From positions 14,136,001-14,200,000 of the forward strand of contig NW_025964112.1 of assembly GCF_023055435.1 (NCBI RefSeq): 64,000 nt of DNA, in the 5' to 3' direction. A model generated the notes under the pieces. The model was given only the letters and a program-made list of their open reading frames with translations. It was not told where the DNA came from and searched no databases. This document shows, in pieces, positions 16,983 to 63,076 of the stretch. Position 1 is the first letter of the stretch, and each line of letters starts with the position of its first letter. The DNA comes from Haliotis rufescens. Lineage: Eukaryota. The position numbers and the translations under genes were made by a program.

Positions 16983-17174
16983 ATGTTATGCGAACACTTT
17001 AACCACTAGGTTGCCCCACTGCCCCCATGCCTGATGTGACATTAAATATACGTGAGGAAAGTCTCACTTTGTCCTATAGGTGCAGTGTCATCAATGGAAA
17101 CCATCTGCTTTGTTTCTGTGGGTTCTTGTTTCTCCTTTACTTCCCTTGGACACCAAAATTAAATAGTTCAGTAA

Positions 17175-17805
17175 TAGGGCTGGGATGACTCTACCTACCT
17201 GGGTAGCCGACCCCCTTTTATCTGACCCTACCTGGGTTCCGGCTGTAGGTCTCAAGTCAGGTTGCCGCCTCCGTGGTCTTGTGGTAGAGCGTCCGCCCGG
17301 GGAGAGGAAGGTCCGGGGTTCGATCCCCGGCCGCGTCATACCAAAAGACGTTAAAAGATGGTACTTGTTGTTACCCTGTCTGGCGCTCGACATTAAGGGG
17401 CTAAAACAAGGACTGGTCGGCTCGGAGTCAGAATACTGTGTCTGAGTGGGGTATTCATGTTAAACTGCGGCATGGTATCTCAGTGAGCTAGCACTATAAA
17501 TCGGCATCAGTCCGGACTAGTACAAGCAGCCACACACACACACACACGTGCATACACGTCGCTATATAAGTGCAATAATCTTGGACGCAACGTTAAACCC
17601 AATTTCACCTCACCTCAAGTCAGGTACAAAATGTCCAATGTAGAATTTTTCGATTGAAAACTACACAGATACATGAATTATACAATCTTATCAAGCATAC
17701 ACTGAAGGTGACAGAAGCTTTCTCTTTACTCAGACATAAAAAAAGTCAAAGAAATAAGTGCATATTTAGTCAGAAAGAAATGTGACCTTGTGTAGCCATA
17801 GAGTT
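17175..17805 (+). mobile_element. hAT MITE family D copy 4, right end lost, interrupted by SINE E
   Basis: TAGGGCTGGGATGA start; resumes at 17626 (ACAAAATGTCC...CATACACTGAAG...CCATAGAGTT). Confidence 0.75.
17263..17613 (+). mobile_element. SINE family E, full length (tRNA head plus Meta/MESC-like central domain)
   Basis: A box TGGTCTTGTGG, B box GGTTCGATCCC, GTCATACCAAAAGAC...ATGGTACTTG...CATTAAGG domain, (TCACC)n tail; perfect 12-bp TSD CTCAAGTCAGGT (17251-17262, 17614-17625). Confidence 0.9.
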
Positions 17806-18160
17806 GACGTGTTACCTTTTCCAGTTGAAACACTTGATGTGTTGGTGTTTATTTTTTATACCAATTTGTATTGACCCTTGTGTGTTGATTAACTACATAT
17901 TCTTACATCCCACTGGTGTTGGTGTTACATAAAAATAATATTAACATTTCGATCAAGTTCCTTTTTTAAATTTTCTTACTTTTCATGAATTTTTCTGTGT
18001 CCTGGACATGTCATTTCCTTTCAGTGCAATAATGAAGCATAACATTTTGTACACTTGAAAGTTTATCACTTATTTACAGCAAAGTTTATCACTCTGTTAC
18101 AGCAACGTTTATCACTCAGTAAAAGTATCATACTTAAGATAAAGCCATTCATCTTGCAAG

Positions 18161-18320
18161 TGTAGTAGGGCGTGGAGTCACCCACAGATGACATCCTTAC
18201 CTTGTCAGATTGCTGATGGGGTTAACCCCTTTGGTCATGTGGACAAGGCGTCCGACCTCTGATCAGAAGGTCCCTGGTTCGAATCCCATCAGGGGACTCG
18301 GAAATTTTATGGCCGCTACA
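18161..18320 (+). repeat. 5' LTR of TRIM
   Basis: 160 bp, TG...CA ends, terminal inverted repeat TGTAG/CTACA. Confidence 0.92.
18224..18297 (+). promoter_or_regulatory. tRNA-Arg-like Pol III type-2 promoter inside the 5' LTR (equivalent copy at ~18491-18564)
   Basis: A-box-like TGGTCATGTGG 18232-18242; GGACAAGGCGTCCGACCTCTGATCAGAAG resembles tRNA-Arg D/anticodon arms; B box GGTTCGAATCC 18276-18286; CCCCT/AGGGG acceptor-like pairing. Confidence 0.8.
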
Positions 18321-18321
18321 T

Positions 18322-18339
18322 TGGCGCCCAACGTGGGGC
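18322..18339 (+). other. Primer-binding site complementary to the tRNA-Lys(CUU) 3' end
   Basis: TGGCGCCCAACGTGGGGC, the canonical tRNA-Lys1,2 PBS, separated from the 5' LTR by 1 nt. Confidence 0.92.
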
Positions 18340-18417
18340 TGAGCACGTTCATATTAAATTTGAGCAAAATAAGCCTCAGTACCCTACTATGCGGCCCAGG
18401 ACGTGCCTTCTGTTGAC

Positions 18418-18426
18418 GGGGGAGTA
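18418..18426 (+). other. Polypurine tract
   Basis: GGGGGAGTA directly abutting the TG of the 3' LTR. Confidence 0.85.
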
Positions 18427-18587
18427 TGTAGCAGGGCGTGGAGTCATCCCACAGATGACATCCTTACCTTGTCAGCTTGCTGACGGGGTTAACCTCTTTG
18501 GTCATGTGGACAAGGCATCCGACCTCAGATCAGAAGGTCCGTGGTTCGAATCCCATTAAGGGACTTGAAAATTTTATGGCCGCTACA
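18427..18587 (+). repeat. 3' LTR of TRIM
   Basis: 161 bp, TGTAGC...GCTACA, ~93% identical to the 5' LTR. Confidence 0.92.
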
Positions 18588-18625
18588 TATTCACAGGACG
18601 TTTTGTCCACCATTCAGTCACATGT

Positions 18626-27083: not shown

Positions 27084-28318
27084 GAGTGAAAGCATGGTCA
27101 AGTACAGTGTAAAGGTGGATTGAGAGCATGGTTTAGTATGGCGTATAGATGGAGTGAGAGCAAGGTCCAGTATGACATAAAGGTGGATTGAGAGCATGTC
27201 GTAAGGTGGATTGAGAGCATGATCCAGTATGACATAAAGGTGGATTGAGTGCATGGTCTAGTATGACATAAAGGTGGATTGAGAGCATGGTCCAGTATGA
27301 CATAAAGGTGGATTGAGAGAGTGGTCCAGTATGACATAAAGGTGGATTGAGAGCATGGTCCAGTATGACATAAAGGTGGATTGAGAGCATGATCCAGTAT
27401 GACATAAAGGTGGATTGAGAGCATGGTCCAGTATGACATAAAGGTGGATTGAGAGCATGATCAAGTATGACATAAAGGTGGATTGAGAGCATGGTCCAGT
27501 ATGACGTAAGGGTGGAATGAGAGCATGGTCCAGTATGACATAAAGGTGGATTGAGAGCGTGGTCCAGCATGACATAAAGGTGGATTGAGAGCATGGTCCA
27601 GTATGTCGTAAGGGTGGAATGAGAGCATGATCAAGTATGACATAAAGGTGGATTGAGAGCATGGTCCAGTATGATGTAAGGGTGGAATGAGAGCATGGTC
27701 CAGTTATGTGTAAACCTGGAGTGAGGGCATGGTCCAGTATGTCATAAAATTGGCTTGAGAGTATGGTCCATCATGATGTAAAGGTGGATTGAGAGCATGG
27801 TCGAGCATGACGTAAAGGTGGATTGAGAGCATGGTCCAGTATGACATAAAGGTGGATTGAGAGTGTGGTCCAGTATGTCGTAAGGTGGATTGAGAGCATG
27901 ATCCAGTATGACATAAAGGTGGATTGAGAGTGTGATCCAGTATGACATAAAGGTGGATTGAGAGCATGGTCCAGTATGACATAAAGGTGGATTGAGAGAA
28001 TGGTCCAGTATGACATAAAGGTGGATTGAGAGCATGGTCCAGTATGTCGTAAGGGAGGAATGAGAGCATGGTCCAGTATGGTGTAAACCTGGAGTGAGGG
28101 CATGATCCAGTATGACATAAAGGTGGATTGAGAGCATGGTCCAGTATGATGTAAGGGTGGAATGAGAGCATGGTCCAGTATGGTGTAAACCTGGAGTGAG
28201 GGCATGGTCCAGTATGATGTAAAGGTGGATTGAGTGCATGGTCCAGCATGATGTAAAGGTGGATTGAGAGCATGGTCCAGTATGACATAAAGGTGGATTG
28301 AGAGCATGGTCCAGCATG
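27084..28318. repeat. Minisatellite, 34-bp unit, ~36 copies, three unit variants
   Basis: GAGAGCATGGTCCAGTATGACATAAAGGTGGATT; the 34-aa periodicity of the overlapping ORFs equals 3 units. Confidence 0.97.
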
Positions 28319-36024: not shown

Positions 36025-36903
36025 ATGGAATGAGATCTAGGCAGAATAACTGTCATAGAGGGCGTACAGTTGTATGGAATGAGATCTAGGCAGAATAACT
36101 GTCATAGAGGGCATACAGTTGTATGGAATGAGATCTAGGCAGAATAACTGTCATAGAGGGGGTACAGTTGTATCGAATGAAATCTAGGCAGAATAACTGT
36201 CATAGAGGGCAGACAGTTGTATCAAATGAGATCTAGGCAGAATAACTGTCATAGAGGGCGTACAGTTGTATCGATGAGATCTAGGCAGAATAACTGTCAT
36301 TGAGGGTGTACAGTTGTATTGAATGAGATCTAGGCAGAATAACCGTCATTGAGGGCGTATAGTTGTATGGAATGAGATCTTGGCAGAATAACTGTCATAG
36401 AGGGCGTACAGTTGTATCGAATGAGATCTAGGCAGAATAACCGTCATAGAGGGCGTACAGTTGTATCGAATGAGATCTAGGCAGAATAACTGTCATAGAG
36501 GGCGTACAGTTGTATAGAATGAGATCTAGGCAGAATAACTGTCATTGTGGGCGTACAGTTGTATCGAATGAGATCTAGGCAGAATAACCGTCATTGAGGG
36601 CGTACAGTTGTATCGAATAAGATCTAGGCAGAATAACTGTCATAGAGGGCGTACAGTTGTATCGAATGAGATCTAGGCAGAATTACTGTCATAGAGGGTG
36701 TACAGTTGTATCGAATGAGATCTAGGCAGAATAACCGTCATTGAGGGCGTACAGTTGTATCGAATGAGATCTAGGCAGAATAACTGTCATAGAGGGCATA
36801 CAGTTGTATCGAATGAGATCTAGGCAGAATTACTGTCATAGAGGGTGTACAGTTGTATCGAATGAGATCTAGGCAGAATAACTGTCATTGAGGGCGTACA
36901 GTT
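36025..36903. repeat. Minisatellite, 49-bp unit, ~18 copies
   Basis: GAATGAGATCTAGGCAGAATAACTGTCATAGAGGGCGTACAGTTGTATC. Confidence 0.97.
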
Positions 36904-56462: not shown

Positions 56463-56634
56463 AGTGAGTGAGTGAGTGAGTATGGTTTTACGCCGCTTTT
56501 AGCAATATTCCAGCAATATCACGGCTGGGGACACCAGAAATGGGCTTCACACATTGTACCCATGTCGGGAATTGAACCCGGGTCTTCGGCATGGCGAGCG
56601 AACGCTTTAACCACTAGGCTACCCGACTGCCCCC
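56463..56634 (-). mobile_element. SINE family A
   Basis: Full reverse-complement copy; TSD TAATG(G/T)GTAAGAG. Confidence 0.92.
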
Positions 56635-58359: not shown

Positions 58360-59560
58360 TGACCTATGCTTCCAACCCTCACCCCTACTCTCACCCTATA
58401 TTTCTTACCTCATCCTTTGTATATCCAACAATTTTACCCTATGGCCTGTGCTACAACCCTCACCCCTACTCTCACCCTATATTTCTTACCTCATCCTTTG
58501 TATATCCAACAGTTTTACCCTATGGCCTGTGCTACAACCCTCACCCCTACTCTCACCCTATATTTCTTACCTCATCCTTTGTATATCCAACAGTTTTACC
58601 CTATGGCCTGTGCTACAACCCTCACCCCTACTCTCACCCTATATTTCTTACCTCATCCTTTGTATATCCAACAGTTTTACCCTATGGCCTGTGCTACAAC
58701 CCTCACCCCTACTCTCACCCTATATTTCTTACCTCATCCTTTGTATATCCAACAGTTTTACCCTATGGCCTGTGCTACAACCCTCACCCCTACTCTCACC
58801 CTATATTTCTTACCTCATCCTTTGTATATCCAACAGTTTTACCCTATGGCCTGTGCTACAACCCTCACCCCTACTCTCACCCTATATTTCTTACCTCATC
58901 CTTTGTATATCCAACAGTTTTACCCTATGGCCTGTGCTACAACCCTCACCCCTACTCTCACCCTATATTTCTTACCTCATCCTTTGTATATCCAACAATT
59001 TTACCCTATGGCCTGTGCTACAACCCTCACCCCTACTCTCACCCTATATTTCTTACCTCATCCTTTGTATATCCAACAGTTTTACCCTATGGCCTGTGCT
59101 ACAACCCTCACCCCTACTCTCACCCTATATTTCTTACCTCATCCTTTGTATATCCAACAGTTTTACCCTATGGCCTGTGCTACAACCCTCACCCCTACTC
59201 TCACCCTATATTTCTTACCTCATCCTTTGTATATCCAACAGTTTTACCCTATGGCCTGTGCTACAACCCTCACCCCTACTCTCACCCTATATTTCTTACC
59301 TCATCCTTTGTATATCCAACAGTTTTACCCTATGGCCTGTGCTACAACCCTCACCCCTACTCTCACCCTATATTTCTTACCTCCTATATTTCTTACCTCA
59401 CCCTTTATATATCCAACAGTTTTACCCTATGACCTATGCTACCAACCCTTACCCCTACTCTCACCCTATATTTCTTACCTCATCCTTTGTATATCCAACA
59501 ATTTTACCCTATGGCCTGTGCTACCAGCCCTCACCCTTCTCTCACCCTATTTCTTACCTT
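58360..59560. repeat. Minisatellite, 81-bp unit, ~14 near-identical copies
   Basis: ATGGCCTGTGCTACAACCCTCACCCCTACTCTCACCCTATATTTCTTACCTCATCCTTTGTATATCCAACAGTTTTACCCT. Confidence 0.97.
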
Positions 59561-61981: not shown

Positions 61982-62162
61982 AACTCCATGTGTGAACAGT
62001 AGCATCATGCGATGTCCACATGCTGATTTAAACATGTGGTGTTGGCAGTTCAGTTTGTGGTCTGATGTCTGTATATGATGTGATGTGTCTGTGTTGAAGA
62101 TGGCAATGTAGTGAGAGAGACATGTACACTCAAACAACATGTAGAGAAAGATCTGACACACT

Positions 62163-63076
62163 TGACAATGAGAAGGAATATGGGATATAAAACAGTTGAC
62201 TATGACAAAGAATGTGGATATATAACAGTTGGCTATGACAAGGAATGTGGATATATAACATTTGGCTGTGACAAAGAATGTGGATATATAACAGTTGACT
62301 ATGACAAGGAATGTGGGATATATAACACTTGACTATGACAAGGGATGTGGGTTATAAAACCATTGACTATGACAAGGAATGTGGAATATATAACCGTTGA
62401 TGATGACAAGGAATGTGGATATATAACAGTTGACTATGACAAAGAATGTGGATATATAACAATTGACTGTGACAAGGAATGTGGGATATATAACAGTTGA
62501 CTATGACAAGGAATGTGGGATTTATAACAGTTGACTATGACAAGGAATGTGGGATATATAACCATTGCCTATGACAAGGATTGTGGGATATAAAACTGTT
62601 GGCTATGACAAGGAATGTGGGATGTAAAACTGTTGGCTATGATAAGGAATGTGGGATATATAAGAGTTGACTATGACAAGGAATGTGGATATATAACAGT
62701 TGACTCTGACAAGGAATGTGGGATATAAAACTGTTGGCTATGACAAGGAATGTGGGATATATAACAGTTGACTATGAAAAGGAATGTGGGATATAAAACT
62801 GTTGGCTATGACAAGGAATGTGGGATATATAACAGTTGGCTATGACAAGGAATGTGGGATATAAAACTGTTGGCTATGACAAGGAATGTGGGATATGTAA
62901 CAGTTGACGATGACAAGGAATGTGGGATATAAAACTGTTGGCTATGACAAGGAATGTGGGACATATAACAGTTGACTATGACAAGGAATGTGGGATATAT
63001 AATAGTTGACTATGACAAGGAATGTGGGATATAAAACTGTTGGCTATGACAGGGAATGTGGATATATGTGACAAGG
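62163..63076. repeat. Minisatellite, 33-34-bp unit, ~27 copies
   Basis: GACTATGACAAGGAATGTGGGATATATAACAGTT and variant GGCTATGACAAGGAATGTGGGATATAAAACTGTT. Confidence 0.96.

Follow-up and report, generated by a model that had tools for sequence, protein, structure and literature searches.

The DNA examined here (the window) is a 64,000-nucleotide stretch of the abalone Haliotis rufescens (RefSeq assembly GCF_023055435.1, contig NW_025964112.1, positions 14,136,001 to 14,200,000 of the forward strand), which is rich in repeats and contains no clear gene. At positions 18161-18587 it carries a 427-bp terminal-repeat retrotransposon in miniature (TRIM), an element in which two long terminal repeats (LTRs) enclose a primer-binding site (PBS) along with a polypurine tract (PPT) and which has no coding capacity (Table 1). 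Alignment of the LTR pair leaves 149 of 161 columns equal (92.5%), with 11 substitutions, eight of them transitions, and one indel, in agreement with an earlier note, made from the letters alone, which had described two direct repeats of 160/161 bp with TGTAG...CTACA ends and ~93% identity. The PBS just after the first repeat and the PPT abutting the second lie where that note had placed them, and the 106-bp interior is non-coding as it had held, the longest open reading frame (ORF) with an ATG start in the whole element reaching 56 codons; the LTR-PBS-PPT-LTR order without an ORF that defines a TRIM is therefore present. The assignment of the PBS to tRNA-Lys(CUU) also proved sound, given its agreement with the tRNA-Lys-CTT 3′ end in Fig. 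S2 of PMC10886601. Each LTR embeds a box A-like motif, TGGTCATGTGG, and a box B, GGTTCGAATCC, and the anticodon-equivalent triplet between them is TCT in the 5′ LTR and TCA in the 3′ LTR. No TATA-like motif, AATAAA or ATTAAA is found in the TRIM LTR. Typical copies of the family open with TGTAGCAGGG (first 10 nt), and the window copy has T at position 6.

Table 1. Coordinates of the TRIM, of its parts and flanks, and of other repeats in the window
Feature	Position	Strand	Remarks
Left flank CAAG	18157..18160	+	Expected position of the target-site duplication (TSD); mismatches right flank; TG upstream fits left target half-site
5′ LTR, 160 bp, TGTAG...CTACA	18161..18320	+	7/161 positions differ from young copy
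Predicted U3 of 5′ LTR	18161..18223	+	Upstream of tRNA-like unit; boundary inferred from box A position
tRNA-like unit of 5′ LTR	18224..18297	+	Box A 18232-18242, anticodon-arm-like 18248-18270, box B 18276-18286
Run of four Ts (T4), only T≥4 run in LTR	18305..18308	+	Predicted RNA polymerase III (Pol III) terminator and R/U5 boundary
Internal region, 106 bp, non-coding	18321..18426	+	1/106 differs from young copy
1-nt spacer T between 5′ LTR and PBS	18321	+	
PBS TGGCGCCCAACGTGGGGC(T), also written TGGCGCCCAACGTGGGGCT, 19 nt	18322..18340	+	Matches tRNA-Lys-CTT 3′ end
PPT GGGGGAGTA, G-rich	18418..18426	+	Abuts 3′ LTR
3′ LTR, 161 bp, TGTAG...CTACA	18427..18587	+	6/161 positions differ from young copy
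3′ LTR parts: box A, box B, T4	18499-18509, 18543-18553, 18572-18575	+	
Right flank TATT	18588..18591	+	Mismatches left flank; followed by CA, fitting right target half-site
23-bp repeat, three units	18058-18126		Just upstream of the TRIM
Minisatellite, 34 bp	27110-28318		
Minisatellite, 49 bp	36028-36903		
Minisatellite, 81 bp	58373-59559		
Minisatellite, 34 bp	62158-63067		

The element belongs to a large and young family. A search of the whole genome with the element gave 1866 first-look candidates, and 59 scored matches are 94-100% identical over the full 428 bp. Genome-wide pattern counts tolerating up to two mismatches returned 635 LTR-PBS junctions and 1741 LTR 3′ ends, the reversed-pattern controls yielding 0 and 1 matches, respectively, and the size of the family can be put at several hundred to ~1,700 LTRs. 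A count of 4,672 obtained with a 24-mer from U3 was rejected as an LTR count, being inflated by closely, regularly spaced arrays. There are 2.7 LTRs per internal part, and hence several hundred solo or otherwise unpaired LTRs. To characterize individual insertions, 34 full LTR-internal-LTR copies were sampled, the window copy included, of which 33 could be scored (one has a mutated landmark); the sample is biased toward well-preserved copies. A perfect 4-bp TSD flanks 30 of the 33, two more match at three of four bases, and only the window copy matches at none, so that the same TG...CA boundaries recur in other genomic copies together with a TSD of the length anticipated by the earlier note (4-5 bp). 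The two LTRs are identical in 14 of the 33 copies and the median LTR identity is 99.4%; since so many copies have identical LTRs, the family must have been active very recently. Moreover, the insertions share a palindromic target motif, ATG|YAWR|CAT, with T at -6 in 29 of the 33 copies, G at -5 in 23, C at +5 in 20 and A at +6 in 21, a symmetric preference of the kind that an integrase leaves.

Tandem forms, which like solo LTRs the earlier note had proposed to count, are also present. Three LTR-internal-LTR-internal-LTR copies each lie within a single TSD. At C112:51216460-51220626, 16 LTRs alternate with 15 internal parts in an array that one TACA duplication encloses; its 15 units of 267 bp are 100% identical, which reflects either a very recent origin or an assembly artefact. 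Two further kinds of repetition involve parts of the element. On one hand, about 30 LTR copies are spaced at ~2,250 bp on one strand of C1:43919548-43988047, in a higher-order tandem repeat, each unit of which holds either a solo LTR or a complete TRIM. On the other hand, a 24-nt piece of U3 recurs at 49 bp and multiples thereof at C1:90650303-90651257, C1:90764176-90764787 and C1:41912343-41912415, a pattern pointing to a minisatellite that arose from a portion of the LTR.

The structural hallmarks of Helenus, also named TRIMp3, a class of TRIMs published in 2024 (Kojima 2024, PMC10886601), are all displayed by the abalone element. Its 427 bp, two LTRs and lack of coding sequence fall under the limit of 1000 bp set for the class; the PBS starts 1 nt past the 5′ LTR and the PPT abuts the 3′ LTR; of the prescribed boxes (A, TRGCY...YGG; B, GGTTC), box B is perfect and box A carries one mismatch in TRGCY; and the 4-bp TSD typical of animal members is seen in the family (30/33), the window copy excepted. 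Because all of these features are present, the kind of element is already known. The names Helenus and TRIMp3, which the earlier note had given from recall, are thus the correct ones (PMC10886601), as is its guess that the class might be known even if the family was not. We assign a probability of about 0.88 to the reading that the abalone elements form a recently active family of Helenus/TRIMp3 TRIMs of which the window element is a member. A genome search for other Lys-primed Helenus families, based on box B, a gap and the PBS, turned up only mutated copies of this same family.

Within this otherwise young family the window copy is an old member, with 6-7 private differences from a young copy in each LTR and one in the 106 internal positions. 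It has no TSD, CAAG on the left and TATT on the right sharing 0/4 bases, although each flank fits its own target half-site, with TG preceding CAAG and CA following TATT. At ~4% decay, a loss of all four TSD matches by substitution would be unexpected; for that reason, the window copy is most likely a recombinant of two older insertions from which the intervening DNA was lost.

A family without coding capacity would depend on proteins supplied by another element, and the PBS offers a way to look for it. An exact match to the 18-nt PBS whose next base is not T is present at 41 places in the genome, of which eight are mutated TRIM copies and most others read GGGGCC. About 30 of the 41 could be located, and all of these are either mutated TRIM copies or directly adjoin the LTR end of a second, long LTR element (hereafter X); some ten are unlocated. 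A first search for a helper, using ACA, one base, the 18-nt PBS and a base other than T, had returned only mutated TRIM copies, and the PBS of X was found once the prefix was dropped. The LTR of X came to light at locus L011, where non-TRIM sequence that terminates in GGCTACA, with AATT behind it, stands ahead of a TRIM internal part. The final 126 bp of this non-TRIM sequence recur at no fewer than 110 places with 98-100% identity, and at least 13 same-strand pairs of these ends lie 8,284-8,295 bp apart. The upstream member of the pair has all 126 bases and adjoins a GGGGCC-type PBS, and the downstream member ends at base 122, exactly at CTACA. In addition, a 301-bp piece further upstream in the X LTR is found at 40 places with 100% identity and the same pairing. 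The start of the LTR at L011:2496 reads TGTAGCAGGG and is preceded by AAAAGGGGGGTGCG; from this start, the X LTR measures ~866 bp, the interior ~7.4 kb and the whole element ~9.2 kb. Outside the termini, the X LTR shows no significant similarity to the TRIM LTR. A Lys-primed long LTR element with TGTAG...CTACA-type ends, for which a search had been proposed, therefore exists, in at least 13 full-length pairs.

X and the TRIM also meet physically. A mosaic concatemer at C583:20392553-20396515 (L011-L013), continuing to ~C583:20404500, consists of alternating TRIM and X LTRs whose modules are joined only at canonical LTR/PBS and PPT/LTR junctions. One module runs from an X LTR through AATT and the PBS into the TRIM internal part; another from a TRIM LTR through T, 11 nt of the PBS and a 22-nt stretch with the X PPT into an X LTR; and a third from a TRIM LTR through AATT and a GGGGCC PBS into the X leader, the next X LTR following ~7.4 kb on. 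At C25 (L043), likewise, an X LTR is followed by TRIM internal-LTR units. The swaps at the PBS and at the LTR ends in the concatemer are the pattern to be expected if both RNAs had been reverse-transcribed in one particle, since intermolecular strand transfer would produce them. As for the surroundings of these loci, a 50-bp satellite precedes the C583 concatemer (L011:1-533). Elsewhere, X LTR pairs only ~1.9 kb apart are found at C334:41463022-41465715 and C190:1964380-1966969; they are probably internally deleted derivatives with ~1 kb between the LTRs, and the short pair on C190 lies in opposite orientation between two LTRs that are 9.99 kb apart.

Whether X is in fact the helper of the TRIM stands at about even odds in our judgement, X being a candidate that is known here from its LTRs, PBS, PPT and leader. 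A competing explanation is that X shares with the TRIM just a common Lys PBS and a TGTAG terminus, and that the TRIM is moved by some other Gypsy-type element. Lys PBSs and TGTAG...CTACA ends are indeed widespread in mollusc LTR elements and in published Helenus, and a comparison of the TRIM internal region with the X leader revealed no similarity; together with the partial view of X, these points leave the alternative a real share of the probability. What makes it unlikely is that the agreement goes beyond a common primer, the first 10 nt of the LTR (10/10), its last 6 nt, GCTACA (6/6), and the 18-nt PBS being identical; that all of the ~30 PBS places located without the following T belong to mutated TRIMs or adjoin X; that X and the TRIM are both very young; and that the two are joined at canonical junctions at C583 and follow one another at C25.

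The unit embedded in the LTRs bears on how the element is transcribed. Box B matches the consensus at 11/11 positions and box A shows one or two deviations; the exact sequences are found in 60 (box B) and 62 (box A) of 66 LTRs, a conservation that among young copies is uninformative on selection. LTR positions 81-110 match positions 17-46 of a tRNA-Arg(TCG) of the same genome at 25/30, and LTR positions 105-128 match positions 42-65 of a tRNA-Thr(AGT), also from this genome, at 21/24; both alignments share one register, and 0 of 1000 shuffles equalled either score. Judged by these alignments, the unit is tRNA-derived, degenerate and Arg/Thr-like. The claim that each LTR holds a ~74-nt tRNA-like unit is thus upheld as regards the A and B boxes and the tRNA-derived similarity, but the resemblance is weaker than had been implied. 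In fact, ARAGORN called no tRNA either in the window or among 20 younger copies, the LTRs went unmatched by the Rfam tRNA model at E≤1 in the window region and at E≤10 in 10 copies, and the predicted fold of the unit is not a cloverleaf; a functional tRNA gene was rejected on these grounds. A 5S rRNA promoter was also looked for, and no Rfam 5S match was obtained at E≤1 in the window region, the unit aligning to tRNAs instead; the Cassandra/Ajax class was accordingly discarded. The third anticodon-equivalent base, LTR position 101 (window 18260 and 18527), departs from the majority in 26 of 66 LTRs, far above any other position, and the triplet is TCT in most copies, TCG, TCA and TGT also occurring.

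As to the source of the unit, the published origin model for Helenus invokes a SINE (short interspersed nuclear element) inserted into the LTR of a TRIM (PMC10886601), and the MESC SINEs of molluscs, Haliotis included, have tRNA-Arg-derived heads with A and B boxes (PMC4758252). A tRNA-Arg-headed SINE is a plausible source of the abalone LTR unit, which fits the published model. SINEs themselves are unlike the abalone TRIM, with tails of the type made by long interspersed nuclear elements (LINEs), variable TSDs, and no LTR, PBS or PPT. Weak tRNA-like matches or ORF translations with a 'GIEP' motif, typical of tRNA-derived SINE heads, were observed at window positions 56557-56628 (-) and 17091-17393 (-) and at L034:70-141 (-), in sequence unrelated to the TRIM LTR. 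A pattern taken from the LTR anticodon arm led to a large tandem tRNA-Arg(TCG) array in the same genome, at C1:30532662-30545271 and extending to at least C1:30568164, with a period of ~309 bp; the pattern has 286 forward matches, and in 3 kb of the array five genes are called by ARAGORN, with small differences between copies, the T arm included. Of ~330,000 candidates in a genome-wide search with the Rfam tRNA model, 63 were scored, which falls short of a full tRNA set.

A second regular feature of the LTR is a single run of four or more Ts, 12 nt before its end and just after the tRNA-like unit, in 63 of 66 LTRs. The internal region is free of such runs in 32 of 33 copies, an absence that is not significant alone in 106 nt. 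Among 21 published Helenus LTRs inspected from PMC10886601, 15 likewise have four or more Ts in a row after the tRNA-like unit and before the LTR end; the paper does not discuss a terminator for Helenus and calls Pol III use unproven. Judging by these motifs, we consider it somewhat more likely than not that the element is transcribed by Pol III from the LTR unit. Transcription would start in the 5′ LTR, a few bases upstream of its box A, read in part through the weak T4 of that LTR, cross the T4-free internal region and stop at the T4 of the 3′ LTR, giving a transcript of ~350 nt. Both transcript ends would then carry an R of ~85 nt, from the tRNA-like start to T4, with a U5 of ~12 nt. tRNA-Lys would prime minus-strand synthesis and the PPT would prime the plus strand, and Gag, reverse transcriptase and integrase would be supplied in trans by a long autonomous element.

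It could also be postulated that the element is an ordinary Pol II TRIM in which a decayed SINE or tRNA fragment is carried along as a passenger, the A and B boxes being unused and transcription depending either on a Pol II start that has escaped recognition or on host genes whose transcripts read through. The rejection of the unit by tRNA finders, its lack of a cloverleaf fold, the hindrance to Pol III expected from T4 in the 5′ LTR and the reservation about Pol III voiced in PMC10886601 would all agree with it. We hold it to be distinctly improbable: the TRIM LTR is devoid of a TATA-like motif and of poly(A) signals (AATAAA or ATTAAA), whereas the candidate helper LTR has both a TATA-like motif and a poly(A) signal; box B is perfect; a single T4 directly follows the unit not only in the abalone LTRs but in most of the unrelated Helenus LTRs inspected; and the design of tRNA plus T run is met with again in fungi, insects, fish and bivalves, in families of independent origin.

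The two remaining alternatives concern the identity of the element itself. A satellite with a 267-bp period, of which the window would hold 1.6 units, might be suggested by the arrays of that period, such as the 15 identical units on C112, and by the recurrence of an LTR piece at ~49-bp spacing on C1; it is very improbable, as LTR-internal-LTR copies with 4-bp TSDs of their own and a common target motif are dispersed over many contigs, and even the arrays sit within one TSD. A pair of separate insertions of a tRNA-derived SINE, 267 bp from each other and moved by a LINE, which the earlier note had named as the finding that would undo its interpretation, can be set aside with near certainty despite the abundance of tRNA-Arg-headed SINEs in molluscs, Haliotis included (PMC4758252), since the repeats have TG...CA ends and no A-rich or microsatellite tail, PBS and PPT lie exactly at their boundaries, and hundreds of copies share an LTR-internal-LTR unit that is flanked as a whole by 4-bp TSDs. 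Assignment to the tRNA-derived SINE class (SINE2) was rejected in view of the LTR pairs, the PBS, the PPT and the fixed 4-bp TSD.

Taken together, the observations would make this the first animal TRIMp3 with a nameable helper, in which the mosaics record strand transfers between TRIM and helper, R extends from the tRNA-like start to a leaky T4, and Helenus extends to gastropods. We put forward this combined proposal tentatively, at somewhat less than even odds, and several points weigh against it. The 5′ end of the X LTR rests on one junction (L011:2496), and the missing similarity between the TRIM internal region and the X leader has to be set beside the shared termini. The C583 mosaic could be an assembly artefact or have arisen by chromosomal recombination through 10-19 bp of homology; assembly error or chromosomal recombination could likewise account for the 16-unit array with its perfect identity. 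As for the promoter, neither ARAGORN nor the Rfam tRNA model recognises the unit, box A (TGGTC...TGG) deviates from TRGCY at one position, and neither the conservation of the boxes nor the T4-free interior carries much weight by itself. Finally, T4 in the 5′ LTR should halt some or most Pol III before the PBS, so that the scheme needs read-through. Retroviruses bypass a poly(A) signal in their 5′ LTR, which provides a parallel to the read-through proposed here.

What is new, the kind being known, is a Helenus family in a gastropod, beyond the pteriomorph bivalves. In molluscs, Helenus has been reported from pteriomorph bivalves, with no gastropod in the paper or its supplements, and has been inferred to have arisen in a pteriomorph ancestor (PMC10886601). 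Our literature search found no report of Helenus/TRIMp3 in Haliotis, nor of TRIMs generally in gastropods. The proposed origin in a pteriomorph ancestor would need revisiting in favour of an older origin or of horizontal spread. Moreover, the abalone family displays a conserved T-run architecture that has gone undiscussed in PMC10886601. The element opens no new category, and its value lies in being a clean, currently active example in a farmed mollusc. To our knowledge, neither Cassandra nor animal Helenus has a known helper so far, and X represents a concrete candidate; if the proposal is true, it would provide a full and testable account of how an LTR element driven by Pol III replicates. 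For annotation, ~1,700 LTRs with tRNA-like boxes, together with the arrays, give rise to false calls of tRNAs, SINEs and satellites.

Outside the TRIM, a Pfam search of the long ORFs of the window returned only repeat artefacts, these ORFs being translations of the repeats listed in Table 1. Elsewhere in the genome, a cluster of several exons at C556:27479767-27778965 matches the abalone sperm-lysin family PF01303 above the cut-off (best 57 bits), with none in the control genomes, in keeping with an abalone, or a near relative of one, as the host.

Among known systems, the pteriomorph Helenus families are the closest. The LTR, internal and total lengths of these families, among them Helenus-1_PiIm, Helenus-2_ArIr and Helenus-3_CGi, range over 104-193, 87-268 and 325-580 bp, respectively (PMC10886601), and bracket those of the abalone TRIM. 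Both have TGTAG...(C/T)TACA ends, A and B boxes within a tRNA-like unit that a T run usually follows, a Lys PBS opening with TGGCGCCCAAC, a GGGGGAGTA-type PPT, the 4-bp TSDs of animal Helenus in general, tandem arrays and an excess of LTRs (PMC10886601). With regard to the latter, the ratio of 2.7 resembles that of the oyster Helenus-2C_CGi, which has 1124 LTRs and 402 internal parts (PMC10886601). In most published Helenus families the LTR unit is not callable as a tRNA (PMC10886601), and Thr, one of the two isotypes that the abalone unit resembles (Arg/Thr), is the isotype called in some bivalve Helenus (PMC10886601). The primers of bivalve families are Lys, His, Ile, Pro, Glu or Ser (PMC10886601), and PBS complementarity extends over ~11-14 nt in those displayed (PMC10886601), compared with 19 nt in the abalone TRIM. 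When 11 words of 9-18 nt from the LTR interior, the 18-nt PBS and the PPT junction were looked up in DataS1 of PMC10886601, 10 were absent, line wrapping possibly hiding some matches; the remaining one, a 10-mer, occurs once, in Helenus-1_PiIm (Pinctada). Outside this set, a generic LTR-end word and shorter PBS words are present as well. Judged by these test words, the abalone TRIM does not appear to be the same family as any consensus in those data.

More distant parallels are found in fish and beyond the Helenus class. LTR-11_DR and related fish Helenus are like the abalone TRIM in total length (~429 bp), high copy number, tandem arrays and a 4-bp TSD, and differ in their His PBS and 43-bp internal part, with no sequence relationship to it (PMC10886601). 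Cassandra of plants, with 5S sequences in its LTRs, and Ajax of a nemertean, with a 5S promoter, are likewise TRIMs that carry the Pol III promoter of a small RNA in their LTRs; theirs is of type 1 (5S), whereas that of the abalone TRIM is of type 2 (tRNA A and B boxes). Cassandra transcription starts in the 5S unit of the 5′ LTR and ends in that of the 3′ LTR, leaving short terminal repeats (PMC10886601). The abalone TRIM would follow the same plan with a predicted R of ~85 nt rather than the 18 nt of Cassandra, a TSD of 4 rather than 5 bp, and an animal as its host.

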